NCBI GenBank assembly: GCA_035084275.1 | Contig: CM068757.1 | Span: 9,734,001-9,798,000 of the forward strand | DNA length: 64,000 nucleotides | Reading direction: 5' to 3' | From: Hydrolagus colliei | Lineage: Eukaryota | Shown: piece after piece, positions 5,901 through 30,500 of the stretch | Layout of the letters: each line of letters starts with the position of its first letter | How positions within the stretch are numbered: the stretch's first letter is position 1 | Program-made: the position numbers and the translations under genes | Notes under the pieces: model-generated | The model's input: the letters and a program-made list of their open reading frames with translations, nothing else | Databases searched by the model: none | Told to the model about the DNA's origin: nothing

Positions 5901-8900
5901 TCTGCTTGTAGATTTCCTTGACTCTTTGCTCTGCCCTGCTTGCCTTTTACTCAACTTCTGTATGTCTCTCTCTCTTGCCAAGCTGTGTTTTAGTTTTGTT
6001 GATTGGGCTGATATTCTGCTTGACAGTCAATCAAGGCTTCTCTCTTTCTCTGTCTCTCTCACTTTTGCCAGTTAACCCTTCACTGCTATTATCCAGGCTG
6101 CAGTACCTGGACAATAACAATTGTCCTGGCTGATCACACAACAGCTGGACTCTCTCAGCAGCTAGTCTGACATTTGGTGTTGGCTGACCACAAACAACCA
6201 GACCTCCCCTCTTCTGACTGTTGGCTCACTGCTCCACTGTGCACTATCCTCCTGCTAGCCTGACCTCTCACTCTCCTGCTGGTTCTCTTTCGTTCTTTTG
6301 ATTGTTGAAATGATTGTTGGTTCTTGGTTGATTGTTGAAATGATTGTGCCTTTACCCCTCAAACCTTCCTATCTTTGAACCGTTTTTGCAGCATCAGGAC
6401 AATAACCAGATTTCTCCTGTTAGTACTGGCCATGCACCCACAAGAATCTGTTTATTGATCTTTGTCCAAATCATTCTCAAACTCATTCAGTTTTAAAAAG
6501 AATGTGTATTCTTAATCATTGTCCCTTAGTACTCCATAAACCCTTGCACCTGACTAGGTCAGTTCAATCCACAACTGTTTGTGGGATACAGAGGGTTGGT
6601 GGATCGCTACTCGGGGCATTAATCCCATTACAAAAAATTCTAATAATAATTTAGTGCTGAACACGTCTTATCAATGTCTCAAAGCTCTTCATAGAATATA
6701 TTGTAAAGTGAATTGACTGTATATTTGTGGGCAAAATGCGGCAGCCAATTGCGCACAGCAGCGTCCCACAAACAGTCGTGGATTGAAATAACCAATTTTT
6801 ATTATTTTTTGATTGGTAATTTTGTCATTGGATTTGAGTTTCTACCTTGGCTTCTTTTACTAATTTCAACTTTAAACCTTTAACCTCTTGTTCTACCATC
6901 TTGGTGCATCATGTTTTACACATTTATGCACCATCTGAGAAATCTTCTCTCAAGACTGATGAGCCCTATCTCATTTTGGCTAAAAGTCCCATTTAATAAA
7001 CAACCCATCAGTCAGAGTGATTGTTATTAACCCCTCTGCTTAAGCAACCATTGATGCCATCTAAAATGGGTCAGATGAACTGGTAACCATGCATTGGTCT
7101 CCAACACACCTGTCCATTTCTATCTCGGTGAGATGCTTCATTTGGGGAAACATAGTTACCTCATTCTTCTGTTGACCTATAGTGATGTAAATTGTTTCGT
7201 TAACTTGCCAAGATTAGATGTATGTAGCTCACTGGTGTTAGTTCATAAATCTTGGGGTTGAAATTCAAATTAGTCTTAATTCATATGGTATTGTTGTTGT
7301 TGTTTGTTGTTGTTGTTGTGATGTTGTAAAATCTAAGTGTTGTGCAAAATTGTTGCATTGAATTAGAAAGCCATTACTTCTAAGAAATGGGAATCATTGA
7401 TTTTTTAAGGAATTTTTCTTAATTTTGTGCAATTCAAAGTTCCAGGGTAGACAAGGTGGAATTTCTGTCTGCCTGTTGCTGTGTCTGAAGTAAATACAAG
7501 TTGTATTATTATTGTCACTGGTGTGTATGTTGTGAGTAGCAAATAAAAGTGCTGCTTGAAAGACAATACTATATTCATGTAAAGAAATTTGATAACCTCT
7601 ACAGCTCAGCCAAACGTCACCTTGTCTCCACGTCACATCAATGTAATCAATGGTTCAGTAGAAGACTTGATGTGTGATGTCCATGAATTTTACCCTGAGA
7701 TGCACAAGATCAGCTGGGTCAAGGTATCGCATGGTGCGGAGATGCAAATTACAACAGGTATCTTGACACGAGATGTAGTTACCAACAAGGACAGCACGTT
7801 CAGTGTTTCCAGCAAGTTGACAATCAGACCAACCGTGGACGACAATGGTAATCAGTACAGGTGTGTGGTGCAGCACAGAACATTCAGTGATACTCTTACA
7901 CTGGAGACAGAGCTGACTGTGGTAATTGAGAATCCACAGGAACCTGCAGGATATGGACCTGGAGCTGTTATTGGAGGTGTAATCGGTGTTGTCCTGATGG
8001 TGATTGTGGTCTTTGTTTTAGCGGCACTTTACTTTTGGAAGAAAACGAAGCAAGGTAAGGATCTTCACAGCCCTAAACAACAACGGCAGACGTGGGGGTG
8101 ATTTATTATACACTAAATGTTCTTGTGCACATTTTCTATTAATAGAGAACAGTCAGCTGACACTTGATCAACTGAAATAGATATTATCCTAATGACAGGA
8201 AAAAGTTTGTGTCAAGGCCTCTGCTCTCTGGGACATTTACCCGAATCTTTTCTAAAGACTTACCTGCTTGATCGTGCTTTTGGTCACTAGCAGCATTCCC
8301 TGCTTCCTCTTGCCACCTCACTCAGTGATCCACACTGTAAAGTACTTGTAAAGTACTTTGAGATGACATCAAAAGATACTGCATGAGGGCAAATTGTTGT
8401 TATAACTGTGGTGATCATTACCCAGGTTTCTTGAGAGAATTAGAATATTTGATGCTACTTTTTGTATGTTCCACAGCTCCTCCCAAGATCAATGAAATCA
8501 GCAAACCCACTCGCTTTATACATGGGCAGCGTGTCGATCTGAGTTGGGAAGTGACTGGTTTCAAACCAAAAGAGATAGAGATCATGATATTACTGACGAG
8601 GAAAGGAAAACAGCCACTGGAGCTATTTGTCTGGAAATTCACAAAGAATAAAAATGAACCAGGTCAGGTTGAAGAAGGTTTTCATCTCCTGAAAACAAAA
8701 AATGGATCTGACGGGGATAATTCGTTCTCTGCTGACACCCCACAATGTGATCCGCTCAAAAAAGGGACCTTCGGGGTAAAGTGTCCCATAAGGTTCTGTC
8801 CTGATGTATCTGAGGACGATGGAGCTCAAATAACAATGCAAGTTCATCACAAGGCTCTGAAACAGCCTCTCAAAAAATCTGTAACTTTAGATGTTGAAGG

Positions 8901-11900
8901 TAAGATTTGCATTGTGCACCTCCCTACCTCCACCGAACCACACCCAAACAATGGCAAGAACTAAAAACATGGAAATCTGGGGTATTGATCCTTTCTAATA
9001 ACAAAAAACTAATAATTTGGTCAATCAATCCAGAATTACAGTGTGAAATTGGCTGCCGGGTTACGCCCATAAAATATGCAGTCAATACACTTTACAGTGT
9101 ATTCTGTTGAGTGCTTTGAGAAGTCTCAACAGTGGGATAAGGCGCGATATCAAACACAATAATTATTATTATAATTAGAGGAAACAAGGTTATTCACCCC
9201 ATCGAGCCTATACTGGTGGTCACTCATCCACTGGAGCTATCTCCCCGTATCCCAATTCTCTACTCTTCCCCCTTACCCAATGATGAGCTGCTTCAAAACC
9301 ACTGCAACATTGTTACTATGTGAGCTCCAAGAGTTACCTTATGCCCAGTAACCCTGTGTGGTCAGTTGACGGATTGACTCAGTTGGTGATGCTCTCTTCT
9401 ATGGGACAGAAGGTCATCAGTATTTCAATTGGCATCTGAAAACCTGCCCTTCACCTCTGGCTATATAGAAGCTACCATAATCTCTGTCACTCTTACTGTG
9501 TGTCACTCTCTCTTTCTTTCCCTCTCAGCTTCAGAGAGAGAAGAGAATAGATTGAGACGGGAAACAAAAGGGGAGAAAGAGAGAGAGAGAGACAGGGAGG
9601 GAGAAAGAAGAACACATAAAAACACAGACAGTTTGTGTTCATACAACTTTTATATTAACATGGAAGTTCTCAGACAATAATAGCCTTGCACATGACATAT
9701 CACCTGATCATGCCTTTGAGACTTCACAGAATAAACTGTAAACAGAGGAATGTGGAGTAAGGAAACTTGCACAATATTTCGCCTGCTGGAAATCGTACCC
9801 AGGTCTCTCGCTTATGAGCTACAGGACTCCACAGAATATACTGTAAAGCAGATTGATTGTGTAATTTGTGTGCGACGAGCAGCAGCCAATTGTGCACAGC
9901 AGTGTCGCACAAATAGTCATGGATTAAATGACCAATTTATTATTTAAAAATATTTTTGAAGCAATTATTATCCCTGAAATACAATCTGAGAATCTACTAA
10001 TAACCAGGTTCCTACATACAGATGGGTAAACAGAGGCGTGTGGATTAAGATTATTTAAGGCCCACCATTTCCAGGAATCAAACGAAACCTGAGGTTGAAG
10101 TATGAACGGAATCCAGGGGGTCAATGTGAGACCCCAGTGTGAGCCCCTAGATTGATTTTATGATTTGTAACTGGACACAGTGTGGCCAGTTGTAGAATTA
10201 CAGCATAATGTTAATAATGTTTGTGGAGTCCTGTAGCTCAGTGGTTAGAGCACTCGCCTTACAAGCGAGGGACTTGTGTTCAATTCAAGCATGGTGAAAC
10301 CTTGGGCAAGTTGCCTTGCTCCACATGCCTGATAATAATCCCTCAAAAAAAAATTGGTCATTTTAATCCACAATTATTTGTGGGGCACTGCTGTGCGCAA
10401 TTGGCTGCCACAATTCACCCACAGTTAATTCACTTTACAGTATATTATGTGCAGTGCTTTGAGATGTCTTGAAGACGTGAGAAGCGCTATATAAAACACA
10501 AGGATTATTAGTAATAACATGCTACTTGTGTTTTACAGCTCCTCCCACGATGACTGAAATCAACATACCCTCTGGTATTGTGCACGGTGTCAATGTGCCT
10601 CTGACATGGGAGGTTAATGGCTTCAACCCACGGGCCATTGTAATTGCTGTATTGGTGAAGAGGAAAGTGGATCAGGAAGCAAAGCAACTGTTTCATTGGC
10701 AGATCCCAGAGAAAGAAAAGCAGCCAATCCCACATGATATTACCCCAAGCATTGCTACACAAGTTAACTCCTTCACTGCTGAGGTGGCAACGATTGAAAA
10801 GACAGATAAAGGGACTTTCAGTGTGAAGTGCAGCATTGCCATGTGTGCTGATGTAATCAGGGATAATGATGCTGAATTCACTGTTGAAGTTAAACATCAG
10901 GCTCTGGATAATCCTCTCACTAAAGCTATAACATTATGTGTCGCAGGTAAATTCTACCTCTGTATTTTCTCTCTCTCTCTGGTGCTAATATGTGAGTTGA
11001 AGTGCAGCATGCTGCTGTGTGTGTCCCTCTATGCTGCAATAGTTATTTTTGTTTGTGACAGTGACGTTCTATCACATAGACATCTGTGCCGACAGCCACC
11101 CCCCTTCCCCTCTCTATCCAGGCTCAGTGGATGACTCTGTCACTTTAAATCGCTCAAACACATTAGCTGAAGTGAACAATGCCATATTAATGCATGTTGT
11201 TGCTGTTGTGTTTGGGGGCAGCTCTGTTGCAGGTTGATGGGGAGGTGATGGGCTCTGTGGTAACGGTCCAGCTCAACATCAGCCTGAAATCTCATCTGTT
11301 TTCTTGAGAAACTTAAACAAATCGATTTTGAGATCCTCAGACTTGCCTACAATTCACCTCTTGCTCTCACACCTCGCTACCTCTCCAATCTGCAAACACC
11401 CACTTGTCAACCCACTCCGTTCGCTTGCTCAAACCTTCTGCATCTTCCTTGACCTGTCCACGAAACTATCGGCAGCCAGGCATTCAACAACGATACCCTG
11501 AACCTCTGAAACTCCCTACCCCAAACTCCAGCTCGCCCTCCATCTCCATCAATCATTGGATCACAGCTGAAGGTTTACTCTCTGACCATGCCTACCATCA
11601 CCTCCCCTCTCTCCCCAGCTCAGTATCAAACTACAATATTGCGAAGCTCATCAAGACGTTACCCTGCATGAAAGTTGCTGTATTAAATGGAAGTTGCTAT
11701 TGTTGAAAGAGTGTGTAACTCTGTCTGAAGCCTTGCTGCAGATTCTCATTGTAAATTGTGTGTGAGGCTGTGTGGTGTGTCCTGTAACTGGATTTAATCT
11801 TTACATGATATTTGTGTTTGTGTTATAGCTCCTCCCGTAATTACTGAATGGCTGGCAACCCCTGATATGACACATGGTGCCACCTCCACTCTGAGTTGGG

Positions 11901-14900
11901 CAGTGACATGGTTCAATCCACGTCCCATTGTAATTGTTGTATTACTGAAGAGAAAAGGGGAGTCGAGATCAAATAAGCTGTTTTATTGGCAGATAGAGAA
12001 AGAACAACCAGCAGGAAATAAACCAGTAAACATTCCTGTTAGCCATGTCACAAAGGATGACTCCATCATTCCAGAGATGGCGATGATTGTACAGGGAACA
12101 AATGGGACTTTCAGTGTGAAATGCAGTGTTACAATGAATGCTGATGTATCCAGGGATGATGGCGCTGAGTTCACTGTTGAAGTTCAACATGAGGCTCTGG
12201 AGAATCCTCTCACTGAATCTGTAACATTGCGCGTTAAAGGGGGTAAGTGCTGCCTCTGTCTGTTCTCTTCTCTCTCTCCCTCACACATCAGTGTAGAAAT
12301 ATTCAGGTGAAGGTGATGATTTTACAAACGGGAGTTTGAAATGATCTGTTAATCTCCAGAGTGAGTTTTGCGGCTGTGTGTGAAGAGAGGCCACGTTATT
12401 CAGGGCTCCGCAGTCACGTGGTTAAAATTATTTTGTAAAAATAAATAATCTGGTGATTTCTGACAAATACGTAATGTTAAAATCTAAAATCAAATGTGTA
12501 TATATGCATTCATATGGGTGTCAGCTCAGAGCATGAAGCACTCTAACCTCTCGTCCATAAGGTTGTGGGTTCACATCACATCAGGACCTGAACCTACAGT
12601 CTAGTAGGGACTTGTAATAAGGAAATGAAATGATAATATTTTAAAGAATTTGATTGTCGACAATGGTTTCAATTTCAAATAATAATTCCCTTTATTACCA
12701 TCTAGGATGACACTGCAGTGTGTGCTGGGGGGGCTCTGTAATGCTGGAGTCTGTTATTTCAGATGTTAAACCATAATCTCATCTGGGTGTTCAGCTAAAT
12801 GGCCGGCAACCCCTGATAAGACACACTTCAGCACTAAAAGAGTTGGGAATTTCTCCAGTGTTTTATCCTCCACCTCTTGCTCTATGTGTATGTCTAGCTC
12901 TCTCTCTGTCTCCCTTTCCCCCTTTCTCTCTTCCTTTCTCTTGTAATCAGTCGGGATAAAATGTAGAATTTGAAATTATTTCTTTGTCAAAAGGCCAGTG
13001 TGCACCCTGTCTGGGGGCAGCTCTTGCAGGTTACTGGAGGCTTAGACAGGCTGAGTGCTTATGATGGAGTTTAACATCACTCTACAGCTCCAGCCTGGTG
13101 CTCTCTGCCATGACTTGCAGGCTTTTCACTCGTTTCTGTGGATTCAGTTTCCAATTTGTATCTGACACAGACATGGACTTGAATGTTTTTATGTGGATTT
13201 GTCATTTTGTTTTGTAGTTCCTCCTAAAATTACATTTGCAAATCAAAAGAAAATGAAACATGGTGAGAATGCTGAGCTGCAATGGACAGTGACTGGGTTC
13301 ACTCCTGGGAAGATCTCGATTGTTTCCAGTCTACGGAGGAAAGGAGAGGAAGTAAGACAACTGTTTCACTGGGAAGTTCCAAATAAGGAAGCATTTCAAA
13401 GGAAGAGAATCCCCTGGAATCTTGAGGACAAATCAGAGAGATCCAACAATGTTGCCTCCTTCACTGCAGTGGTGCCTAAATGTGAACACGACACCAAAGA
13501 AGGAACCTTCAGAGTAAATTGCAGAATCAACATGACTCCTGATGAGTCCACGGATGATGGAGCTGAATTAATTGTTCAGGTTCAGCATGAGGAATTTCCT
13601 GATTTTGTCACTGACAGTTTAAAAATAAACCTTGCTGGAGGTAGGTTCTGCCATCAATATTGTGTCCTCTCTGTCCCATATGCTCTGTGGCAGTGTTTAG
13701 AATAAAGTAACAGTTTCCTCCACAATGGTTCAGCAACTGAGATCACCACTCAGTGAAACCCAGAGCCTCTCAGTCCAGAAGGTGGCAGGATATGGCATCT
13801 GAGAAATCTCGTCATAGTGCGTAAGATTATCCAAACCAGAGAGTTCATCTGTGCCATCTGCATGTGGAAATTTCCCTTTTTCCAGAATGGAATGCTCACA
13901 GTAGTAAACAAACTTGGATCAAGAGCTTGACTAACAGGACTACCTCAGGATTGATTTTACTCCGATATTGTCAAGTGCATTATTGTTCAAACAGAGAGTG
14001 AGTTTGCCCCAGTGTCCTGGCCAACTATCCCCGTTATAAAATCTGTCACTTAATTCATCGCTATTTACAAAATGTATGCATCCTGTTTACCTGTTACCAG
14101 AGAACATTAGCTGCACGTTGGCAAGATACAAAGCTTGGAGGTCACAGAGTATGTGCTGGAATACTGCGGGAATTTAAGAAGGGAAATGCGCATAGTTTGC
14201 TATTTCTAGTTAGGACCACACCACCTGTTAAGGCTTTGGTTTGCAGGGTTAAAAAGACCTGAATAGGTGGAATCCCTGCTCTCAGTGACTGGTCTTGCTG
14301 TCCCAGGCCTGCTGATGAGCCAGGCCGACTGGTTTATAATCAGCAATGGCCTGAAGAGCTGGGAAACCACTTGGAACAGTAACTGAGACTGAGTCTCAGG
14401 ATTGATTTGGTTCCGATAATGCATTCTCAAGTGCATTATTGTTCAAACAGAGAAATGAGTTTGTCCCAGTGTCCTGGCCAACAATCCCCGTTATAAAATA
14501 CATTACTTAATTCACTGCTGTTTGTGGGGCACTGCTGTGTACAAGTTGGCTGACACATTTGCCTTCAAGTACAGAGCCAGTGAACTTCACACAAATATTC
14601 TGTGATGCGCTCTGAGACGTCTCAGTGATGTGATAAGGTGTTATATGAGTTGCAAGAATTGTAAGGATTATTAGAATGTTGTAGCCGTCTTATCTCAGAG
14701 GAGATACTGCACACCTCTGTTCCCCCTCCCCCCAGGTGGGCTGAGCTGAGCTGAGGCAGTAGCTGTGCAGCTCTGTTTGGTCTCTGTGGGTGAATTGTCT
14801 GCCCACATTGACAGTCTGGGCTGAGACATGAGAAACCCTGGTAATTAATAGAGAAAATAATCCAAGCTCACCTCCTGATCAGCACCTTGGATACCTCTCA

Positions 14901-16642
14901 CCTTCACAATATCGGACAGGTCAGATCTCTGCAGCTGGGAAGTACACACACCACACACAGGCTGAGTAACATTATTACAGAGTGTAAGTTATTCAGGAAT
15001 CATTTACATTTTGGTTCCACTGGGTGCTGTGTTCATGTGTCCGTCTGGCTCACTTGGCAGTGCTCTTGTCTCTGTGTCAGAAGGTATTGAGTTCAAGCCC
15101 CACATTGACACACTGGCTGTCACTCCAGTGCAGTGCTGCAATGCTTATATTGTGTTTCTGTTTTATAGTTCCTCCTCAAATTATTGGACCCAACCTACCC
15201 AAGACAATTCTGCATGCTGTGAAAGACACAATGACATGGGTAGTTACTGGGTTCACTCCTGGGAAAATGACCATCATTTTCAGCCTGAAGAGGAACGGGC
15301 AGCAACAGCAAATACAACAACTGTTTCACTGGGAAATTCCCAACAAGGAAATATTTCAAGAGTCGATAGGAGGAGCTTTTCCTCTCCAGGACCGATCGGA
15401 TAGAGACAATAAAGATGCGTCCTTCACTGCTTTGGTGCCAAAGTGTGAACCTATTGGCGATGGGACTTTCAGAGTAAATTGCATCATTGATATGATTCCT
15501 GATATTGATACGGATAATGGAGCTGAATTATCTGTTGAGGTTCATCATGATGTTATTGTTGGCTCTTTCACTAATAATGCAATATTACTCATTACTACAG
15601 GTAGGTTCCTCGATCATTGTTCACCAGACTCTCTCTGTCTCTGTACTCTGTGCCAATGTTTAGGACATTGTAATGATTTGTTCCCCCATGGCCCAGCAGC
15701 TGAGGTCATTGCTCAGTACAGGGTTGAGTCGAGTCTCTCAGGCCAGAAGCTCTGAGATTCGAGTGCTGGTCTGGGAGCTGATCTGAGCTGACCTGGGCCA
15801 GTAGCTGTGCTGGTCCGTTTGTATGTCAGCCTGGAGCTTTGGTAGCACTTTTGCCTCTGAATCAGAAGGTTGTGAGTTCAAGCCCCACGTCAGGACTTGG
15901 AATCACATCGTCTAAGCTGACACTCACTCCAACGCAGTGCTGGATGTCTGTGCATTATCGGTGGTGCTGTACTTTAAATGAGATGTTAAACGCACGTTCT
16001 ACCCGCTAGTTCAGGTAGACATTGTAGATCCCATAGCGCTATTCGAAAAGGGAAGTTTCTTCAATCCCACAACTAACATAGGTCACTCATCCCATGGTTG
16101 TTTCTGGGACATTACAGTATGCAAACTGGTTGCTGTGTTCGCCAACAAAATATACAGTTAATCCACTTCACAGTATAACCTGTGTAGCACTTTGAGACAT
16201 AATAAGGTCTATTTCAAATGATAGGATATTAGAGAATATAATCAAAGCTCACGATCACCACAGTGGATATCTCTCACCTCAGATGTATCAGGTCTCAGAT
16301 GAGATCTCTGCAGCTGGGAAGCAACAGCCTTAATGCAGTGTGCACAGTATGCAGAGGATAAGACCATAAGATTTAGGAGCAGCAGTAGGCCATTAGGCCT
16401 CTCGAGCCTGCCACGCCATTCAATAAGATCATGGCTGATGTTCTAATCTAACTCCACCTGCCCACCTTATCCCCATATCCCTTAAAACCTTTATTCATAA
16501 GAAATCTATCAGGATGTAAGTACTCAGAGTACATTTTACAGGATGTTGTAGTTTTTTCTGGGGCAGCTCTATTGCAGGTTAATGTTCGGGTGATTAATAT
16601 ATTGAAATTTCCTTTAGTTTAGATGTGGAAATATTCGCATAG
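2820..16642 (+). CDS. Gene 1: B7/NCR3LG1(B7-H6)-like type I membrane protein, leader-V-C1-TM plus 5 predicted cytoplasmic Cys-less C1-like domains, ~1003 aa
   Basis: Exons 2820-2919, 4418-4759, 7605-8054, 8477-8899, 10539-10946, 11829-12242, 13218-13640, 15169-15600, 16623-16642. All GT-AG; internal lengths are multiples of 3; total 3012 nt with no internal stop. Confidence 0.85.
3205..3650 (+). mobile_element. L2-clade LINE RT fragment (frameshifted)
   Basis: [12 protein letters not shown]...[20 protein letters not shown], then [13 protein letters not shown] and FHMYVDD in a shifted frame. Confidence 0.85.
3690..3960 (-). mobile_element. L2 RT fragment, opposite orientation
   Basis: Minus strand reads [16 protein letters not shown] around 3860-3905. 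Confidence 0.7.
4418..4759 (+). CDS. Gene 1 exon 2, IgV domain
   Basis: VVLQCNVT...VRWF...[22 protein letters not shown]: canonical V-set Cys/Trp/Cys; acceptor tacacag|, donor TCAG|GTAAGC; 342 nt. Confidence 0.92.
5530..5860. repeat. Purine-rich low-complexity tract followed by (CAA)n
   Basis: GA-rich run, then aacaacaac/aataat repeats. Confidence 0.75.
7605..8054 (+). CDS. Gene 1 exon 3, IgC1 domain plus transmembrane helix
   Basis: [10 protein letters not shown]...ISW...FSVSSKL...[13 protein letters not shown], then [31 protein letters not shown]; 450 nt; donor CAAG|GTAAGG. Confidence 0.92.
8477..8899 (+). CDS. Gene 1 exon 4, post-TM C1-like domain 1
   Basis: APPKI...[10 protein letters not shown]...LFVW...TFGVKCPI...[12 protein letters not shown]; 423 nt, AG/GT, open frame. 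Confidence 0.85.
10222..10515 (+). mobile_element. tRNA-derived SINE with Deu-domain-like core, ending just before the exon 5 acceptor
   Basis: Head gagtcctgtagctcagtggttagagcac...ttcaattc; core tttgtggggcactgctgtgcgcaattggctgcc; tail gcgctatataaaacacaaggattatta. Confidence 0.8.
10539..10946 (+). CDS. Gene 1 exon 5, post-TM C1-like domain 2
   Basis: [10 protein letters not shown]...LFHW...TFSVKCSI...[12 protein letters not shown]; 408 nt, AG/GT. Confidence 0.85.
11829..12242 (+). CDS. Gene 1 exon 6, post-TM C1-like domain 3
   Basis: [10 protein letters not shown]...LFYW...TFSVKCSV...[12 protein letters not shown]; 414 nt, AG/GT. Confidence 0.85.
13218..13640 (+). CDS. Gene 1 exon 7, post-TM C1-like domain 4
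   Basis: [10 protein letters not shown]...LFHW...TFRVNCRI...[12 protein letters not shown]; 423 nt, AG/GT. Confidence 0.85.
15169..15600 (+). CDS. Gene 1 exon 8, post-TM C1-like domain 5
   Basis: [10 protein letters not shown]...LFHW...TFRVNCII...[12 protein letters not shown]; 432 nt, AG/GT. Confidence 0.85.
15838..16220 (+). mobile_element. Old SacSINE1/AmnSINE1-like DeuSINE
   Basis: ggtagcacttttgcctctgaatcagaaggttgtgagttcaagcccca head, gctgacact...gagatgttaaac...gatcccat.gcgctatt middle, Deu-like tail. Recognised from memory of the family consensus. Confidence 0.6.
16356..16510 (-). mobile_element. CR1 (HER1/HE1-like) 3' end fragment
   Basis: ccataagatttaggagcagcagtaggccatt...gccattcaataagatcatggctgat is the reverse complement of the shark-type CR1/HE1 3' tail. 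Confidence 0.65.
16623..16642 (+). CDS. Gene 1 terminal coding exon (D)VEIFA*
   Basis: Acceptor tttag|AT homologous to 496/497 and 31441/2; followed by the shared 3' UTR-like sequence; candidate AATAAA at 17447. Confidence 0.6.
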
Positions 16643-18179: not shown

Positions 18180-18490
18180 CCCATCAATCAAGACCCTCAA
18201 CTGTCCTTCCTACTCCACATCAGTGCCATGAACCGCTCTGCCTTCTCCCACCTCCTCAACATCGCCAGGCTTTGCCATTTCTTCACTCCTCAGGCCGGTG
18301 AAACCCCTCATTCACATGTACATCTTATCTAGGCTTGACTACGCCAATACCCTGTTTGTCGGCCTTCCGAACTCTTCCCTTCACAAGCTGCCGATCACAC
18401 AGAAACTCTGCAACCTGTGTCCTCTCCCTCACCAGGCTCTGTGACCCTATTGCCCTCATTCTCGCCAGGCTCCACAAAGGCACTATATCA
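18180..18490 (+). mobile_element. Degenerate L2 ORF2 3' fragment
   Basis: tctaggcttgactacgccaatacc (SRLDYAN)...gccaggctccac (ARLH), typical of the L2 C-terminus. Confidence 0.65.
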
Positions 18491-19104
18491 AATACGAGGA
18501 TTACGATTATTATTGGAGGTAAGGAGGTGCCAGGGATTGAAATGATTTAAAAACGATTGTGAGAATCTTGAAAGTGATCAATTCTGGCGTCGCATTTCTG
18601 TGAAGTGCTTTGAGACGTCTAGAATACATGAAAGGTGTTACATCAAATGCAAGGATCATTATTAATTGGCAATAGGGCGCCACACCAGGACTTGTGTGAT
18701 CATGTATGGAGTTTAATACAGGTGAGTACGTGGGTGAGTTTTGGATCAGCTGGATTTTGTGAATAGTGGATCTGGGGAGGAAGGCAAGGAGGGGATTTGA
18801 GTACCAGGATTGCAAAAATTATTCTCATCATCAATAATAACAATTTGGTCGCTCAATCCACGCCTGTTTGTGGGGCACTGCTGTGCACCATAGGCTGCCT
18901 CGGTTGGCCCACAAAAAAAAAGAGCTTTGAGGCATCTGGACGATGTGATGAGGTTCAATATCAAATGCGAGGATTATTATAACAATCACTACAGTGTGAA
19001 GAATATTATTATTATTATAAAAAGCGCTACAATTAATAAACAGTTGACCAGTGAAGCGCTTTCACACACTATATTTCCCTGCTGCTGCTCTTTTCCTTTT
19101 CCCA

Positions 19105-21403
19105 GTTCAACAGGTTTCTGTAGGTGAGCATCTAGGGAATAGTGACCACAATATCGTTAGATTCAGAATAATTATGGAAAGGGATAAGGAACGATCACAG
19201 GTGAGGACACTCAACTGGAAAAGGGCTAATTTCAATGAGTTGAGGTAGGACCTAGCCAAGGTGGATTGGAAAGAAAGATTGGCAGGTAAGACAACTTAAC
19301 GAGCAGTGGGCAGTGTTCAAAGAGGAGATAGTTCAGGCACAGGTCAAAAGCATCCCCACAAAGGTGAAATGTAAGGCATCCAAACCTCCCTGGATGACTA
19401 AGGAAATCGGGGCCAAAATAAACCAAAAAAAAGAGGCTTATGATAAGTGTCAGGCTCAAAATTCAGAAGGGAACCAAGCAGAATATAGGAAGTGTAGGAT
19501 AGAACTAAAAAAGGAAGTTAGAGGGGCAAAGAGACTGCATGAAAAACAATTAGCGAGTAAGATTAAGAGGAACCCTAAGGTTTTTTACCAACATATTAAG
19601 AGTAAAAGGTTGGTCAAGGATAGGGTGGGGCCAATTAGGGACCTAGGAGGAAATCTCATTGTGGAGGCAGAGGGCATGGCTGATGCACTGAATGAGTACT
19701 TCGCCTCTGTCTTCACAAAAGTAAAGGATACAGCCAATGCCATGGTATTGGAGGAGAGGGTAGGAGAAATGGATAGAATAATTATAACCAGAGAGGAAGT
19801 TCTAAAAAGGTTGACGTCGCTCAAGGTGGATAAGTCACCTGGTCCGGATGGGATGCACCCTAGGTTACTAAGGGAGGCACGGGAGCAAATAGCAGGGACT
19901 CTGGCCACGATCTTTCAATCTTCCTTGGACACAGGGGTCGTGCCAGAGGACTGGAGGATAGCTAATGTTACTCCCTTGTATAAAAAGGGGCAGAAGGACA
20001 AGCCTGGTAACTACAGACCAGTCAGTCTAACGTCGGTAGTGGGCAAACTTCTAGAGTCCATAATCAGGGACAAGGTAGATCTTCACTTAGAAAGATATAG
20101 GCTAATAAAGGACAGTCAACATGGATTTGTTAAAGGCAAATCTTGCCTTACAAATCTGATAGAATTTTTTGATGAGGTAACGGAATGGGTGGATAATGGT
20201 AGCGCAGTTGATGTAGTTTACATGGACTTTCAAAAGGCATTTGACAAAGTGCCCATGAGACTTATTAGGAAATTAAAGGCCCATGGCGTAAAAGGGACAG
20301 TGGCAGCGTGGATCCACAACTGGCTGCGAGACAGAAAGCAGAGAGTTGTAGTGAGCGGCTGTTTTTCAGACTGGAGGGAAGTGAGCAGTGATGTGCCACA
20401 GGGATCGGTTTTGGGACCATTGCTGTTTGTAATCTACATCAATGATCTGGACTTGGGTGTACGGAGTACAGTTTCCAAGTTTGCAGATGACACTAAGTTA
20501 GGGAGAATAGTAAATAGTGAGGAGGATAGTAGCCATCTGCAAGAGGATATAGACAAATTGGTAAAGTGGGCAGACACATGGCAGATGAAGTTTAATGCAG
20601 AGAAGTGTGAGGTGATGCATTTTGGGAGAAGAAATGAAGGGAGGCAATATAGGCTAGATAGTACAATTTTAAATGGTGTGAAGGAACAGAGAGACCTGGG
20701 GATTTGTGTTAGTGACTCGTTGAAGGTGGCAGGACAGGTAGACAAGGCTGTTAAGAAGGCATATGGGATACTAGGCTTTATAAATAGGGGTATAGAGTAC
20801 AAAATCAGGAAGTGCTGACTAACCTCTATAAGACTTTGGTGAGGCCTCAGCTGGAATACTGTGTTCAATTCTGGTCACCACATTACAGAAAGGATGTGAA
20901 GACATTGGAAAGGGTACAAAGAAGATTTACTAGGATGGTGCCAGGATTGAGGGACTTCAGCTATGAGGAGAGGCTAGATAGGCTAGGGTTATTCTCTCTG
21001 GAGCAGAGAAGATTAAGGGGAGACCTATTAGAGGTTTATAAGATCATGAGGGGTTTCGACAGGGCAAATAGAGAAAAACTATTTCCACTCGTGGGCGAAT
21101 CTGTGACTCGTGGTCACAGATTTAAAATAGTTTCAAAGCGAAGTGGAGGGGAGCTGAGGAGAATTTTTTTCACTCAGCGAGTTGTTCGAATCTGGAATGC
21201 ATTGCCTGAAAAGGTGGTGGAGGCTGATTCGATAACAACTTTTAAAAGGGAATTAGATCTTTATTTAGGGAGAACAGGTCTATTAGGCTATGGGGAGCGG
21301 GCAGGGCAGTGGGATTGAATCGCTCTTTTCAAAGAGCCGGCATAGACTAGATGGGCCGAATGGCCTCCTTTTGTGCCGTAAAATTCAATGAATCTATCTA
21401 TGA
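19105..21403 (+). mobile_element. CR1-clade LINE, 5'-truncated, near-intact RT region with one frameshift
   Basis: VSVGEHLGNSDHN start; 501 aa ORF with [51 protein letters not shown]; ORF resumes 20812-21318; tail aattcaatgaatctatctatga. 1-bp deletion near 20803 relative to the copy at 53864-54624. Confidence 0.95.
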
Positions 21404-21489
21404 AAAAAAATGACGATAACTCGGGATCTGTGTTCGCAGCTTAAAGCTAATCTGCTGTGAATGCAATAATAGCGTTAAACACCATCCCT

Positions 21490-21498
21490 TTCCGAGAA
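21490..21498 (+). promoter_or_regulatory. GAS (STAT) element of gene 2
   Basis: TTCCGAGAA within TTTCCGAGAAA. Confidence 0.65.
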
Positions 21499-21510
21499 AT
21501 CATACACGAG

Positions 21511-21524
21511 AGTGAAAGTGAAAG
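21511..21524 (+). promoter_or_regulatory. ISRE/IRF-E of gene 2
   Basis: AGTGAAAGTGAAAG ~68 bp upstream of ATG. Confidence 0.8.
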
Positions 21525-21591
21525 CACAGCCCCAGTCAGTGCGGCTGGAAGCTGGAGAGAGAGAGAGAGACACACACACAGAGAGACAGAC

Positions 21592-24500
21592 ATGTTGAGG
21601 GGGACAAACTCGGCTATAATGTCCTCACCCGGTGGAGCTGCCAGGGCGCTGACCCTCGTCCTGATCCTCGGGGCTTGGATTGCAGGATCAGGTACAGAAA
21701 ATGCGCAAACGTTAGACTGATTTGCTGCTGGATCCCACCGCTGAGCGAGACACAGAGACACACCGCTAACTGGAGGCTGCCCTGGGGGGGGGGGGGGGGG
21801 GAGCACAGCCGGAAGGGTCTGTGTTTGGGGTTTAGCTGATAAACAGCGAGCGGTGGAAGCAGAGAAGCCAGAGAAGCGTCAGGGTATTTTGGGGTTGGTA
21901 CATCTGGCGGCCCGCGGGCCAATGTCACTCCTCTACCCCCACCCTCCCCCTCATTTCCCTGTCGCCCTCCCCCCCCCACCCCTCCCTCCCTATCCCAGGA
22001 ACGTGATGTTTCTGGAAGCCAAACACTAAATTGTTGCTTGTGTGGCCCGCAGACGTTTCCCAAATGAGGGCATCTTGTCCTCCTCAGCATTAAACAACAA
22101 CAACAACTTCGATTTATACAGCGCCCTCCACGCCAGACGGCGTCTCAGAGCGCCTTAAAGGGGTATTCACCATGAAGGAACTTTGGTGGGGGCTGAACGC
22201 AAAGGGTCGCCCTTATCCCACCCTGCAGAAAACATTAACAACTCATCTCCGCAGACTTAACTAACGCTTCGTGTTTTCGTTTCCAACCCGAGGATGATTG
22301 AAAGAATACGAAAGCAGGTTATAATAGATAATGCAACACGCAGCGTCCTTAAAAGTTATCTGCAATCTTTTGTGGAACATGCCTTGAACGGTGTCTTCTT
22401 GGTGACTCCTGAGAAAAAATTGCCATTTTACTACAAGGGAATGACAATTTGCTGCTGGGGAATTTTTGAAATGGCTGCTGGGAAAATCCCCAGCACTTTA
22501 TATGTTAAAAGTTTAACAGTTAAACCAACGCCCTGCTGTGCGCTGGCGGTGAGGACTTTAACTCGGTGTTGCACAACTCTCCACAGTCAGCGCAAATTGC
22601 ATTGTTGTGATGTATTGCATACAATATCAAGTTGTAGTGAAGCAGATACATTGGAAAGATTGAGGAGCCTCAGTCATGGAAACCCAATCTTGTGACTGGC
22701 TGCCTCGCCAGCCTGAGAGAAGCCGTCGCTTCCTCCACTGCTGCCTAGTGGCGGTGTTTAGGTATGGAATCAACAGTGTAACACCATTGGAATACATTAT
22801 CCTCGCATTTCATTTAATGCCTTATCAAGATGTCTCCAGCTTTTCGCGCTCGCGTTGTTACAGAGTCGCCTAAGATTAAGATGCCGTTTGTTCCTTCGAA
22901 CTGTGCTTTTGGTCATCAACACAATTCTGCAAAAAGGCAACGCAACATTTGTTCCAGTTGGATTTCAGGAGCTTCATATGTACAACAAAACGACAACAAA
23001 ATGACACTTGTAGAGCTCCTTTCACATCAGGGGGATGTCCCAAGGCGCTGACTTTGTATGAGACTTTGTAAAGGATTGTGTACAGTATAAGTAAATCCAG
23101 ATCAATGCGTTCAGATAAATAAATGCAACAGGATTCCGGGTTACGAGTAAAGGAGCACAATTTCACTTGAGACTAGATAGAAGTTTTTATTTAACGCAGA
23201 TTATAATCGATGACTGAATTGGGTTACCAGGTAGGGTGATGGGTGAGGTAAGAATAATTGGCTCATTTAAAAAAATTAAGTGCCGGGAGGGTGGGAAGAT
23301 AGTTGTATTGGAGGGTTGAAATTAGCCGAAGGGTCCTCTTCTTCATCCAAACCTCTCTTGTGATTTAAGATTATGACTTATTGTAATTTAAGATTAAGTT
23401 ATAAAAGTACGTTTATCATCTCCACAGCTCAGCCAAATGTCAGCTTGTCTCCACAACACATCGTTATCACCAATGGCTCGGCGGGCTTTCTGAGATGTAA
23501 AGCAACTGGAAATGTTCCTCAGGATACCGTAATCAAATGGATCAAGGTATCAGGTGATGGGGAGACAGAGATTAATTCCTCAGATTTCGGCACTGCGTTT
23601 ATAGATGCCAACAGTGTTTCCAGCCAGTTGAGGATCAGACCAACCATGGACGATGATGGCAATAAGTACAGGTGTGTCGTGACATACACCCCATCCAATA
23701 CTGTTATTGCACAAGAGGCAAAGCTGACTGTGGAGGAACCCACTCTACCATGGCCAATTATTGGAGGTGTCATTGGTGGAGTATCGTTGATAGTGTTGAT
23801 TATATTAGTACCTTGCATCTGCTGCCGCCGGAAACAAACTGAAGAATTTAAGAAAGAAAGAGGTAAGATTTGGTTATTCGATTATAAATGGTGTGGTAAT
23901 ATCTCTTGCCTTAAACAATCAGTAGATGAAATGTCCATATGAAGGCAAAAGGGGGCCGAAAATGTTTTGGTTTCCAACTGGGTTCCTTCCAATGGAAACT
24001 GAGCAAGGATGAACTCCTTCCAGTAACCAAACGGTGTCTTCTAGGATCTGCTGACAGGTAGGCGTCCTGTGAATCAGAGTGACTTTATGCAGATGTATTA
24101 TCTGTGAGAAACACTGAAACAGATTAAAGATTCTATGTATGGGTATTGTCTGTGTTACCAATGGATGATGTTATGCAGATAAGAAATAGTTGAGGCCAAA
24201 GGATGGGATGTGATGTAAAAGGCGCTATACAAATGTAATTTTGTTGTAGTTGTTACAGCAATTGCCTCAGTGAACACCAGCGAGGACTAAACAGAAATGG
24301 GATGAAAAGCTGTTGGGAGAAATTTAGTGTAGATATTTGACTGGGACTATTACAGTTGGGAACCTTAGTGATATACCCCACACCAGAGTCTGTTGATGAA
24401 TATGAGGTGCAGTCAACTTTCTCATTACTATTTACTGTACTACTATGAGTGATTGCGTGGACCTCCTTAACTTGTTTCCCAGCACAAACCTGTGCTGCAA

Positions 24501-27500
24501 GTCACCTAACATCAGACAATAGGGACCTGATATTCCTTCTCCTGTTTCACACATGTGACAAGTGAAAGAAATTGACCCAACATGGACAACATATATATGA
24601 GGGGATCAATGCTGTATTAGGCTTTCACTGAACACATTCTGCACCATAATGCAGCTATATAATAATAATCATCCTTGCATTTGATGTAGCACCTTATCAC
24701 GTCTTTGAGTCGTCTCAAAGCGCTTCCCATAATATACTGTAAAGTGAATTGACTGTATAGTGTGACACTGGCAAAACTCGGCAGCAAATTGCGCAACAAA
24801 TTATTATTCTTTTGAAGGGATTATTACCTCTGGAAAAGTGACCCACCAATCGACTAACAACTGTGTTCCTACTTATTGATGGGTGAACAATGGGTGTGGG
24901 GTAATGGATCTTGCCACACGTGTGCAGCTGGAAAACGGGGTTGAAGTTGCGATATTTCTTAATGGAATTTCCTAGTACGAAATCAATATGGCCAAATGGG
25001 ATTTCCTTCCAAGACCCTTGATGTCTGTCACACCAAACCAGAGGAATGCTCCAATATGGAGTTATTCCAGGGTAGAGTTATCACAGGTCAATTGGAATTC
25101 TAATGGAACCCCTTAAGGTACACCACAAATTAGAAACTAATATCGCACGTGAGAGATGTAAAATGAAATGTGCGATTTTGTTCTAATTCCCTTATAGGTT
25201 CTCCTCAGATCAATCTATTGACTAAACAAGACCAGTTTAAGGATGGTGTGGCGTCTCGTATAAAATGGGAAGTTACTGGGTTCACTCCCCGGAACATATC
25301 CATTGCTTTATTATTGAGAAGAAAAGGAGAAGAATTTCAGAAATTATATGATTGGAATTTGATAAATAATGAAAACCTAGAGAATGGCGAGAAAGGTCTT
25401 CTCTTAAACTCGTCAAGTGTACAGGATTGGAATAAGAAAGAAGACTCCATTACTGCTGAAATCTCCAATTGCATTCAGTTGAAGGATGGCACGTTCAACG
25501 TGAAGTGCACGATAACAGTCCGTCCTGATGCACCCAGGGATGACGGAGCTGAAGTCTCACTGGAAGTTCACCATGATACCCTTAAGACGCCGCTCACTTC
25601 ATCATTTAAGTTAGTCATTGAAAGAGGTAAGGATTATGATCTGCATTCCTCTCTCACCAAACAAAAAACCACATGTGGAAACATAGAATCATAGAAATTT
25701 CACAAAAGGGACAAATACTGGTTATCTAATTCCACAGTATATTTGACCCAGATTGTCCATGGTGTAGGTTTGGGATCCTCAGAGTGTTCTTGAGATCTTT
25801 GAGATAAATTCTACAGATTAACTTGCTATTCGGAGCACTGACTCTCAGCTAGTTGTGATGGTACAGTATTGACATGTCCTAATGCCAACTCCCAAATGGG
25901 CTCTGTTGTATTATCTGTGAAAACCATTTGCCCTTCAGTTACCCAAATACACTTTCTGAGGTCCCATTTGGTTGAAGTGCTGCAGTGGACTTCATAATTT
26001 GCATTTATTGCGGCTTGGTATATTGCCATCTGTGGTGTAGATATACGACAAGGACTAATAGAGTTGGGAACCTCAGTGATATACTCTACACCAGGGTCTG
26101 TTGATGAACATGAGATGCAGTCAACTTTCTGATTACTATTAATCACTGTGAGCGATTGTGTGGAACTCCTTAACCTGTTTCCCAGATGTGACAAGTGTCT
26201 GAATGAAATTGATCCAAGATGGATTTTATTGTCCATAAACACAGAATTGTATATGAGGGGATGACTGCTGTATTAGTCTTTCACTAAACAAATTCTGCCC
26301 CCTAATGCAGCTATATAATAATAATCATACTTGCATTTGATGTAACACATTTTCACTCCTGTGAAGCGCTTTGAAACGTCTAGAAGATGTGAAAAGCGCA
26401 ATATCAAATGCAAGGATTATTATTATTATCTCAAAGTGCCCAACAGAATATACTGTAAAGTGGATTGACTCAATAGTGTGACACTGGTGAAATGTGGCAG
26501 CCAACACAACAACAAAATTGCACTTATATAGCGCCTTTCATGTCGGGAGGATGTCCCAAAGCACTGAAATAGTGCACCAAATTTTTTTTTTTGGTAGAGA
26601 TTATTACCTCTGGAAAAGTGATCTGCTGATCGATTGACATCTGTGTTCCTACTTGCTGCTGGGGGAATAGTGAGTGTGGAGTAAGGGAACGTGCCCAATG
26701 TGTGCAGCTGGAACACTGGGTAGAATTTGTGATATTTCTCAATGGAATTTCCTGGTAAGATATCAATGATGGCCAAATGGGGTTTCGTTCCACGAGCCTT
26801 GATGTCTGTCACATCAAACCAGAGGAATACTCCAAAACGGGCTTATTCCGGGGTAGAGTTATCACAGGTCATTTGGAATTCTAATAGAATCCCTTAAGGT
26901 ACGCCACAAGTTAGAACCCAATATTGCACTTGAGAGTCTTGAAATGTCTGATTTTATTCAAATTCCTTTGTAGTTTCTCCTCAGATCAATATATTGACCA
27001 AACCCGACCACGTTAAGGATTGTGTGGCGTCTCACATAGCTTGGGAAGTTACTGGGTTCACCCCCCGGAACATAGCCATAGCTTTGTTTGTGAGGAGAAA
27101 AGGAGAAGAATCACAGAAATTATATGATTGGAATTTGATAAATAATGAAGACCCACTAAAGAATGGCGAGAAAGATCTTCTCTTAAACTCGTCATGTGTA
27201 CAGGATGGGAATAAGAAAGAAGACTCCATTACTGCTGAAATCTCCAACTGGATTCAGTTGGAGGATGGGACATTCAGCGTGAAGTGCATGATAACAGTTT
27301 GTCCTGATGCATCCAGGGATGACGGAGCTGAGGTCTCACTGGAAGTTCACCATGAGACCCTTAAGACGCCGCTCACTTCATCATTTAAGTTAATCATTAA
27401 AAGAGGTAAGGATTGTGTTCTGCATCCCTCTCCCACCAAACAAAACCCACATGTGGAAACATAGAATCATAGAAATTACACCAAAGAGACAAACAGAATA

Positions 27501-30500
27501 TTTGACCCAGATTTTCCAGAGTGTAGGTTTGGGATCCTCAGAGTGTTCTTTGAGATAAATCCTACAGATTAACTTGCTATTCAGAGCACTGTCTCTCAGG
27601 TAGTTGTGGTGGTACAGTATTGACATGTCCTGATGCCAAATCCCAAATGTGTGTGGGGTAAAGGATCTTGCCACACGTGTGCAGCTGGAAAACGGGGTTG
27701 AAGTTGCGATATATCTCAATGGAATTTCCTAGTACAAAATCAGTGATGGCCAAATGGGGTTTCCTTCCACGACCCTTGATGTCTGTCACACCAAACCAGA
27801 GGAATGCTCCAATATGGAGTTATTCCAGGGTAGAGTTATCACAGGTCAATTGGAATTCTAATCAAACCCCTTAAGGTATGTGACAAATTAGAACCCAATA
27901 TCTCGCGTCAGAGACTTAAAATGAAATGTCTGATATTATTCTAATTCCTTTTTAGTTTCTCCTCTGATCAATTTATTGACCAAATCCAACCACGTTAAGC
28001 ATGGTGTGGCGTCTCATATAGCCTGGGAAGTTACTGGGTTCACCCCCCGGAACATAGCCATTGCTTTGTCCGTGAAGAGAAAGCAAAAAGAATCACAGAA
28101 AATATATCATTGGAATTTGAAAAATAATGAAGACCTACTCTTAAACTCGTCTTGTGTACAAGATGGGAATAAGAAAGAAGATTCCATTACTGCTGAAATC
28201 TCCAACCGCGTTCAGTTGGAGGATGGGATGTTCAGCGTGAAGTGCACGATAACAGTCTGTCCTGATGCATCTGAGGATGACGGAGCTGAAGTCACACTAG
28301 ACGTTTACCAAGAGACCATTAAGAAGAGGATGAATTCAGTGGTGAAGTTAGTCGTTGAAGGAGGTAAGGATTGCGCTCTGCATCCGACTCCCATGCAGTA
28401 ACATAAAACCATAGAAATTACACCACAGGGACACACACTATGTATCTAATTTCAGAGAATATTGAGCACAGATTGTCCAGAGCGTAGGTTTGGGATCTTC
28501 ATAGTGTTCGTTGGGTTAACTCCTACAAATGAACTTGCTATTCGGAGCACTGTCTCTCAGGCAGTTGTGATGGTACAGTATTGCCATGTCCTGATGCCAA
28601 AGCCCAAATGGGCTCTATTGGATTGACAATCAGTATTATCTGAGAAGACCATTTGCCAGTAGTTACCCAAATGCACATTCTGGAGCCCCTTTTGGTTGAA
28701 GTACTGCTGTGGAGTATGTAATTTGCATCTGTCTCAGCTTGGTATATTACCATCAAGTCTCTAGGAATTCTATAGTGCGCTCCTTTGGGTTCATTATTAC
28801 CAGGCTTACCTTGTGATGTCTGTTTTATAGTTCCTCCTGCAGTGACTGAAATTGACATGTGGCCCGAGGTTAAACATAGTGAAGTGGCCAGTCTGAGTTG
28901 GTCAGTCATCGGGTTTGCTCCAAAGCCCATTTCCATTATTTTCTTTCTGAAGAGGAAAGCGGATCAGAAAACAAAGAAGCTGTTTCACTGGCAGATCTCA
29001 GAAAAGGGAGGAATAGATGATGAACCAAAGATGGGGAGCACTGCTCTCAAAGATGTAAGGGAGCAATGTGAGGAAGATGATATCATCACTGCTGTGACAC
29101 CCCACTGTGTGAGGAAGAACGATGGAACGTTCTGTGTAAACTGCAGCATTTGGATGACTGCTGATATGTGCAGGGATGATGGAGCTGAATTAATCATCGA
29201 AGTCTTTCACAAAGCTCTTGAGATCCCTCTCAAGACATGTATGACATTACACGTTACAGGAGGTAAGAGCTGCATTCATGTATGTGTGTTGACGTGTATT
29301 CTGAAGAGTATAGTTTGCACAGTAAAACCTCGATAATCCAGCATTCCGAAAGCCGGCAGTTCCCTAAAACCAGCAAGATTTCAAAATATGTGCAGTATTA
29401 GATTCATTTCCGATGTCGGCAAATCTCCTGAAGTTTAGAGCAGCAGCTTGGAGTCACGGTGTCGCCACTCTGTCAACCGGCGCTGTGGATGGAGCTCGGG
29501 GCATTGTTTTCTTTCAGTGCTATGTTTACAGCACACGTGGTATCTGTGGCGACTCATTCCCAGCCATTACTAGGTAGGTTTCTAAATACCGACAAACTCC
29601 AAAATCTGGGAAGTGCATGGGCCCAACTCTGCTGGTTTAGCGAACATATGCACATAATGAGTGACCATATCATTATTTTCGATAAAAAAAATTTGAAGGG
29701 ATTATTATCCTTGGATAAGCGATCGACTAATTGACTAGTCGGGTTCCTGCTTACCGCTACAGAGCCGTGTGAAGTGAGGAAACTTGCGAAATGTTTTGCC
29801 CTGCCCAGGAATCGAAATAGGGTCCCCTTGAGACAAGATGAGTTTGAGATTACTTTGACGTTTGGGGTTAGCAATTGCCTGGTTGAGCCACAAATAAGGA
29901 GACACCAATAATGTTTTCCACATAAAGACCGATAAAGAACATGCAGAATGAGATGATTTATTTTCAAATGTGCTTGTATCACAAAGTGACATGTTACAGA
30001 ATGACAGCACAGTGTCCATTTAACACGCTTATTTCTGTTTTCTAGTTCCTCCCACAATCACTGAAATCAAGAAACCCCCTGAGATCACTCCCGGGGAGTT
30101 GGCCAGCCTGAGCTGGGCAATTGTTGGCTTCAGTCCACAGGCCATCAACATTGTTACCTTTGTGAAGAGGAAAGGGGAGAAGGTGAAAAAGAAAGTCTGT
30201 CATTGGCGGATCCCAAAGAAAGACAAGGAATCTCAGGAAGCTAAGACAGCCAGTGTTCCCCTCGACAATGTCGCAGAAGGTTGTGAGGAAGATGGCTCCT
30301 TCACTGCCGTGACGCCCCACTATGTGCAGAAGAATAATGGGACGTTCAGTGTAAACTGCAGTGTTTGGTTGTGTGCTGACGCATCTCAGGATGATGGAGC
30401 TGAATTAATGGTTGAAGTTTACCATGAGGCCCTCAAAGAGCCTCTCATTAAGTCTAAAACATTACATGTTACAGGTAAGTTCTGCCTCTGAACGGTGTCC

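Follow-up and report, generated by a model that had tools for sequence, protein, structure and literature searches.

Ten copies of an unusual immunoglobulin (Ig)-like domain lie behind the membrane anchors of two neighbouring genes in a 64-kb stretch of vertebrate genomic DNA (Hydrolagus colliei, contig CM068757.1, positions 9,734,001 to 9,798,000 of the forward strand; "the window" always denotes this whole stretch of 64,000 nucleotides). Judged from its sequence, the region belongs to a holocephalan related to Callorhinchus and comprises two B7-H6-like (NCR3LG1-like) genes in tandem, and these are part of a + strand cluster of V/C1 genes of the Ig superfamily, the members of which are the only genes of the window. 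In the reading that we regard as probable, each of the two B7-H6-like genes carries a cytosolic array of five C1-derived, disulfide-independent Ig domains that was amplified by exon duplication.

Two Tandem Genes with Five Domains Each

Searches of each piece against the window with tblastn recovered the domain, which measures ~140 residues, in exactly ten copies (D1 to D10), all of them within 8477-30474. Both coordinates had been given in an earlier note on this DNA, which was made from the letters alone, and they agree to the base with the start of D1 and the end of D10. The same note took the ten domains for parts of one gene; instead, they are distributed over two tandem genes (A and B) with five domains each, and either gene has a leader and a terminal mini-exon of its own. 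That there are two genes rather than one follows from the second leader exon and from the separate terminal mini-exons after D5 and D10; the second leader exon and the two terminal exons likewise rule out a single gene with two anchors. All ten D exons show a pyrimidine tract and an AG acceptor, a G/GTAAG or G/GTAGG donor (the slash marking the exon end), a length divisible by three, and phase 1-1.

Gene A (its exons, like those of gene B, are on the + strand) opens with a leader exon at 2847-2919, which has a phase-1 donor and a matching leader in the Callorhinchus models P0172 and P0173, followed by a V-set exon at 4418-4759 (placed by its splice sites and a Pfam V-set match of 3.9e-08) and by one single exon for the ectodomain C1 and the membrane anchor at 7605-8054 (Pfam C1-set, 1.3e-12), with a phase-1 donor after KKTKQ. 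Behind the anchor come the Ig-like domains D1 (8477-8899), D2 (10539-10946; the one modelled with AlphaFold and compared by Foldseek), D3 (11829-12242), D4 (13218-13640), and D5 (15169-15600), of which D1 and D3 rest on splice sites and alignment, and finally a terminal mini-exon at 16623-16642 (repeat family D15; spliced model) that adds DVEIFA and the stop. Spliced together (leader, V, C1 plus anchor, D1-D5, tail), these exons encode 994 amino acids with the sole stop at the end.

Gene B has its leader exon at 21619-21691 (phase-1 donor; repeat family D11) and its joint exon for C1 and anchor at 23428-23862, with no V exon between the two. It continues with D6 (25198-25626; splice sites and alignment), D7 (26974-27405), which is a recent duplicate of D6 (synonymous substitutions per site, dS, of 0.15; ratio of non-synonymous to synonymous rates, dN/dS, of 0.57), D8 (27956-28363; placed by repeat and paralogue comparison), D9 (28831-29262), and D10 (30046-30474), and ends with a mini-exon at 31442-31455 (DGGN, then stop) that aligns with the end of a Callorhinchus milii gene. 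This model (leader, C1 plus anchor, D6-D10, tail) encodes 883 amino acids, again with the sole stop at the end. According to tblastn, the window holds only three V exons (at 4426, 36576, and 58073) and four C1 exons, and no V exon of gene B was found with either the V exons of the window or the Callorhinchus V sequence as query. The V-less layout is matched by the Callorhinchus model P0172.

Several side observations concern the ends and the surroundings of these genes. The leader regions (2789-2955 in A, 21561-21727 in B) are 98 % identical, whereas the C1 exons share only ~40 % amino acid identity, which suggests recent gene conversion or a duplicated 5' end. The terminal mini-exon region occurs a third time at the left window edge (432-510; DGANN...), which implies that another gene of the family ends just inside the window. 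The space between genes A and B, where a V exon of gene B might be expected, contains an open reading frame (ORF) for a reverse transcriptase of the long interspersed nuclear element (LINE) type at 19313-21318 (+); a fragment related to it occurs at 53943-54542 (-). At the boundary of C1 and anchor in gene A (7922-7939), there are 18 in-frame bases, GTAATTGAGAATCCACAG, which start with GT and end with AG and may be the remnant of a lost intron.

Residue Pattern and Predicted Fold

In the alignment of the ten domains, the position of the B-strand Cys is occupied by Trp (TGG) in every case (LSW, LTW, LSW, LQW, MTW, IKW, IAW, IAW, LSW, LSW), the Trp of strand C, expected 14 residues after the B-strand Trp, is lost throughout (I, V, V, S, F, L, L, L, F, T), and the position of the F-strand Cys is always aliphatic (M, V, V, V, V, L, L, L, I, V). 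Strand E, in turn, carries a Cys in all ten domains, as VKC or VNC. The residue lists that had been given for these four positions are correct in full; overlooked was a second invariant Trp in strand C' (W52 of D1, motif LFHW). Altogether, 15 columns are invariant, further residues of this kind being F28, P30, I35, R41, G96, F98, V100, D109, D113, A116, and V122. The domains hold one to six cysteines each, frequently an odd number, and an insertion of 33-45 residues separates strands C' and D.

The descent of this domain type from C1 domains is indicated by a profile-profile comparison with hhalign, in which a 49-sequence alignment of the domain type matched eleven ecto-C1 domains with a probability of 97.5 % (E = 6.7e-12) over 104 columns that span the whole C1 domain. 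In this alignment, the B-strand Cys of C1 corresponds to the Trp, the C-strand Trp to V37, the second Ser of SVSS to the conserved Cys, and the F-strand Cys to Val, so that the equivalences proposed in the earlier note for the sites in strands B, C, E, and F are all upheld. Moreover, a jackhmmer search seeded with the ecto C1 recovers the D domains in three rounds, and a sequence profile search of the PDB returned weak matches to C1 domains (E 0.02-1.6), including the C domain of B7-H6. A match to ribosomal protein L19 in the latter search was rejected as noise.

Structure prediction, a check that had been named in the earlier note, yielded a confident result: the AlphaFold2 model of D2, computed with the family alignment, is an all-beta Ig sandwich with a predicted local distance difference test score (pLDDT) of 95 and a predicted template modelling score (pTM) of 0.88. 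Its strands comprise residues 18-28 (B, with the Trp), 33-40 (C), 48-55 (C', with the second invariant Trp), 83-87 (D), 93-102 (E, with the Cys, followed by a short helix), 112-118 (F), and 126-131 (G), while the long C'-D insertion forms short extra strands. When this model was compared with the PDB by Foldseek, 311 matches at E <= 0.001 were obtained, and all 50 listed are Ig domains. Among the matches listed, V-type domains rank first because of the extra strands in the D2 model, and the beta-2 domain of major histocompatibility complex (MHC) class II also matches. From the in/out alternation of hydrophobic and polar residues and the alignment to known core positions, we infer that the side chains of W23, W52, C102, and the aliphatic residue of strand F face the core. 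A C1-type origin and the lack of any possible canonical disulfide are upheld by hhalign, AlphaFold, and Foldseek, and the D domains are most likely folded Ig-like domains with a core that does not need a disulfide.

Relatives and Membrane Topology

A profile of the ten domains retrieved 201 protein clusters at E <= 0.001. The thirty relatives that were looked up stem from sharks, rays, elephant shark, bichirs, coelacanth, many frogs, a newt, and alligators, and automatic annotation calls them 'uncharacterized', 'NCR3LG1', or, occasionally, 'CD276-like' or 'butyrophilin-like'. The listed models have 1 to 7 full-length copies of the array domain each. Among solved structures, the ectodomain of gene A is most similar to human B7-H6 (9.4e-23), with CD276 and TAPBPR ranking lower. 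The domains of the window share 55-84 % amino acid identity with their Callorhinchus counterparts (80 % for D9 and 84 % for D10), and an elephant-shark paralogue of the same architecture is found under UniProt V9K7L7, an entry separate from the genome models that we take to be of transcript origin. In Heterodontus francisci (XP_067902348.1, model P0001), seven near-identical domain copies, each after an acidic linker GKTIPKEIEDDSDRSLLENVPDSERV, show that the array expanded very recently in this shark. The searchable literature, of which the part on B7H6 evolution was covered incompletely, yielded no description of Ig domains that follow the anchor of a B7-H6-like protein.

Both gene models predict an N-terminal leader, one central anchor with basic residues after it, and no later hydrophobic segment. 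Among the relatives, a hydrophobic anchor lies at most 110 residues ahead of the first array domain in 91 of the 105 models that have at least 200 residues upstream of this domain. Across 97 family proteins, the net charge is -0.8 before and +2.5 after the anchor, and the enrichment of N-glycosylation sites on the leader side of the anchor (z = 11) gives way to a nearly random frequency behind it (z = 2.7), where a conserved NGTF motif explains part of the small excess. Finally, the full pair of canonical Cys is kept by 130 of 140 pre-anchor domains of the relatives compared to 220 of 487 post-anchor C1-like domains, which amounts to a loss in 7 % and 55 %, respectively. On these indirect grounds, that is, leader and single anchor, charge bias, glycosylation-site statistics, and loss of Cys behind the anchor, the cytosolic location of the array that the earlier note had proposed is the best reading. 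Loss of the disulfide as an obligatory adaptation behind the anchor is contradicted by the 220 post-anchor domains that retain both Cys.

A Stepwise History of the Core

The order in which the core was remodelled can be approached by comparing 118 full-length domains of the relatives, including the ten from the window. The full pattern of Trp at the B position, C' Trp, E-strand Cys, and aliphatic F-strand residue is found in 41 domains, among them the ten of the window, and ~40 others have Cys at the B position and are otherwise the same; ~20 are canonical Cys-Trp-Cys domains, which are second and later post-anchor domains, for example, in coelacanth and elephant shark. Taken singly, the C' Trp occurs in 93 domains, irrespective of whether the B position is Cys or Trp, and 84 domains have the E-strand Cys. 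In the relatives from coelacanth, frogs, a newt, a bichir, and alligator, Cys at the B position is mostly kept along with the E-strand Cys, the aliphatic F-strand residue, and the C' Trp. In one coelacanth domain, the B position is Cys and the E position is Trp, which hints that the two sites might be neighbours in the core.

In a tree of 122 domains of this type, all copies from the window, Callorhinchus, and sharks form one clade of 48 (43 with Trp and 5 with Cys at the B position; support 94), and Trp at this position also appears in a small clade of batoids and at two points among the frog sequences, so that the whole tree requires at least six changes between Cys and Trp. The five Cys rows of the clade are the Callorhinchus counterparts of D4 and D5 (genome exons and protein models), which have TGT where the window has TGG, Cys to Trp being a single-base change at this position (TGY to TGG). 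The E-strand Cys is not beyond replacement, either: it had been called invariant, as indeed it is among the ten domains of the window, and yet the Callorhinchus counterpart of D4 (L001 865-1284) has Tyr (TAC) instead. Since disulfide-independent domains with Cys at the B position are widespread and the Trp occurs mostly in one clade of sharks and chimaeras, the rewiring appears to have been stepwise. By this comparison of sequences, Cys at the B position would be the older and commoner state, and Trp would be typical of a clade and yet reversible.

The earlier note had a different history in view, namely one concerted response to the reducing cytosol: the core Trp would have shifted from strand C to strand B, a change fixed once and inherited by all copies. 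Such a course would account for the pattern common to all ten domains of the window and for the single clade that unites them with the Callorhinchus and shark copies. However, the changes are separable, as there are bichir, coelacanth, frog, and alligator proteins that have lost the F-strand Cys and possess the E-strand Cys and the C' Trp but still have Cys at the B position, and fixation in one event is at odds with the repeated changes in the tree, including the independent Trp in batoids and frogs and the Cys in the Callorhinchus D4 and D5 counterparts. The proposed move of the Trp from strand C to strand B is also incomplete as a description: one Trp is lost and another gained, as stated, but the Trp that tracks the domain type is the near-universal one in strand C', not that in strand B. 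Canonical domains, furthermore, persist behind the anchor, and altogether we consider a concerted change unlikely.

For the stepwise history preferred here, the following sequence can be proposed. A disulfide-independent, membrane-proximal domain type would have arisen in early jawed vertebrates with Cys still at the B position; the unpaired B-strand Cys would then have been converted to Trp by one base change in a lineage of cartilaginous fish; and the Trp-type domain would finally have been amplified through exon duplication.

Selective Constraint and Competing Readings

Among the paralogues of the window, dN/dS ranges from 0.26 to 0.81; as synonymous sites are mostly saturated, such pairwise values are uninformative for distant paralogues. 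The counterparts in Callorhinchus are better suited, with dS of 0.12-0.33, and gave dN/dS values of 0.80 for D1, 1.16 for D2, 1.79 for D4, 0.91 for D5, 0.54 for D7, 0.43 for D9, and 0.60 for D10. The pooled ratio is 0.80 overall, 0.64 in the predicted strands, and 0.97 elsewhere. Gaps between window and Callorhinchus are multiples of three in 8 of 9 cases in exons, while 45 of 48 gaps in introns are not, and the chance that all ten exons would remain jointly stop-free after 0.10 neutral substitutions per site is ~1e-7. In-frame gaps and stop-free exons argue that the D exons are coding and that the fold is kept. Accordingly, and in agreement with the earlier note, the exons are not decaying pseudo-exons; frames, splice sites, and core residues are all preserved. 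A dN/dS near 1, which the same note would have taken as speaking against its reading, is found in part, namely in the pooled value and in D2 and D4. Most surface residues seem, from these comparisons, to evolve almost freely while the fold is retained. Conservation is higher in D9 and D10 than in the V domain, for which the exon (4418-4759) has a nucleotide identity of 0.717 to its Callorhinchus counterpart (L001 20105-20431), below that of the flanking introns (0.804), which suggests that diversifying selection might act on a receptor-binding V domain.

A number of observations speak against functional cytosolic arrays in both genes. The pooled dN/dS is high, with D2 and D4 at or above 1, and nucleotide identity to Callorhinchus is the same in exons (0.83) and introns (0.82), which implies weak constraint on most residues. 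No Pfam family matches the D domains: for five domains tested there was no match at E <= 1, only one of the ten reaches the C1-set (PF07654), with E = 0.16 and below the gathering score, and the Pfam scans gave no match to the I-set profile. In relatives, 45 % of the post-anchor domains keep both Cys and the C-strand Trp. Isoforms without an anchor, in which the first array domain follows immediately upon C1, have been annotated for horn shark (P0153), stingray (P0181), and toad (P0029) and are also seen in P0016 and P0038; in these, the array would be secreted.

The last two points lead to a reading in which the array is mainly extracellular: a splice form without the anchor would release a long V-C1-(Ig)n chain from the cell, and the anchored form would be secondary. 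In several species C1 is indeed in frame with the first array domain in such isoforms, skipping preserves the frame as all exons are phase 1-1, and the Cys-Trp-Cys triad of many post-anchor domains could form disulfides upon secretion. Against this stands the gene structure: genes A and B as well as Callorhinchus have C1 and anchor in one exon, so that the anchor cannot be skipped alone, while the horn-shark and stingray isoforms, which lack only the anchor segment, imply a separate anchor exon in those species. The anchor is also retained in the large majority of models, loss of the canonical Cys is far more frequent behind it than in ecto domains, and post-anchor glycosylation sites are close to random expectation. 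The often odd cysteine counts of the window domains point in the same direction, since odd counts are unusual for secreted Ig domains. A mainly secreted array is therefore improbable in our judgement, and the cytosolic array remains the preferred reading.

Even less credible is an array without any function of its own, the frames of which stay open only because an internal stop would lead to mRNA decay and loss of the ligand: it would be in line with dN/dS near 1 outside the strands, with equal exon and intron identity, and with the widely differing copy number among species, but it leaves unexplained fifteen columns invariant among paralogues with saturated synonymous sites, identical core residues that recur from sharks to alligators, the stronger constraint on strands than on loops, the conservation of D9 and D10 beyond that of the V domain, and the fact that gene A, gene B, and Callorhinchus all keep five of these exons, although their symmetry would make a loss harmless.

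Comparison with Known Systems

B7-H6 (NCR3LG1) is the B7-family ligand of NKp30, and the cytoplasmic tail of the human protein is not of the Ig type but contains signalling motifs and a Gag-like segment. Gene A shares with it a V plus C1 ectodomain and a single membrane anchor, several relatives bear the NCBI name NCR3LG1, and in both cases the genes are clustered and evolve fast. In contrast, the tails of genes A and B are made up almost entirely of five Ig-like domains, a V domain is missing from gene B, and C1 and anchor are encoded in one exon.

C1-set domains (PF07654) are the constant domains of Ig, T cell receptors, MHC, tapasin, and B7 proteins. The D domains resemble them in the motifs GF-P--I-I and DGTF-V and in a short helix ahead of strand F that is followed by -V-H--L--P; they differ in lacking the canonical disulfide and the C-strand Trp, in the long C'-D insertion with extra strands, in falling below Pfam detection, and in their placement after a membrane anchor. 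Tandem disulfide-free Ig sandwiches as such are familiar from titin, obscurin, and myosin-binding protein C, the I-set Ig arrays of which fold in the reducing cytosol. Those, however, are I-set domains of soluble cytoskeletal proteins, whereas the D domains are C1-derived and belong to a type I immune ligand.

A parallel in tandem amplification of C1-type exons in a gene of cartilaginous fish is UrIg2 of sharks, which has a V domain and 9-11 C1 domains followed by an anchor, the C1-type exons having been amplified by tandem duplication to numbers that differ between species (PMC12227049). All UrIg2 domains, though, precede the anchor and keep the canonical disulfide and Trp, whereas the array of the window follows the anchor and lacks both. 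Genes A and B were considered as UrIg2 genes and rejected as such, given that the UrIg2 anchor comes after all of its domains (PMC12227049).

Possible Roles and Implications

In the cytosolic reading, the five-domain array would hang in the cytosol behind the single anchor, and its surface would evolve fast, like the ectodomain. It might serve as a spacer, as a self-association module, or as a docking surface that controls display of the ligand. On a wider scale, we entertain as a tentative possibility, somewhat short of an even chance, that B7-H6-type ligands of most non-mammalian jawed vertebrates carry a folded cytosolic C1-derived array as a fast-evolving interaction surface that couples intracellular events to the display of natural killer (NK) cell ligands.

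In the prevailing view, Ig domains of the C1 type are extracellular and a hallmark of adaptive immunity. If the cytosolic reading is true, the arrays would represent the first case of this 'adaptive-immunity' domain type acting inside the cell, for example, as a self-association, cytosolic sensing, or decoy module, and a C1 array behind the anchor of an NK ligand from sharks to alligators would alter views of both B7-H6 biology and C1 evolution. A natural Ig core that folds without a disulfide, with Trp or Cys at the B position, a new Trp in strand C', and an aliphatic residue in strand F, would also be pertinent to the design of antibody-like domains for use in the cytosol.

Further Features of the Window

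Downstream of the two arrays, the window holds two more B7-H6-like genes (36570-40700 and 58067-63000) of ordinary build, that is, without an Ig array behind the anchor. Both have a V exon, a C1 exon with a phase-1 donor, a separate anchor exon (at ~38691 and ~60157, respectively), and a short cytoplasmic exon that carries a YETV motif. Between them, at 45900-53200, there are at least four tandem copies of a ~1.88-kb unit with a strong skew of G over C, which is seen as repeated ORFs at 45948, 47828, 49708, and 51586.

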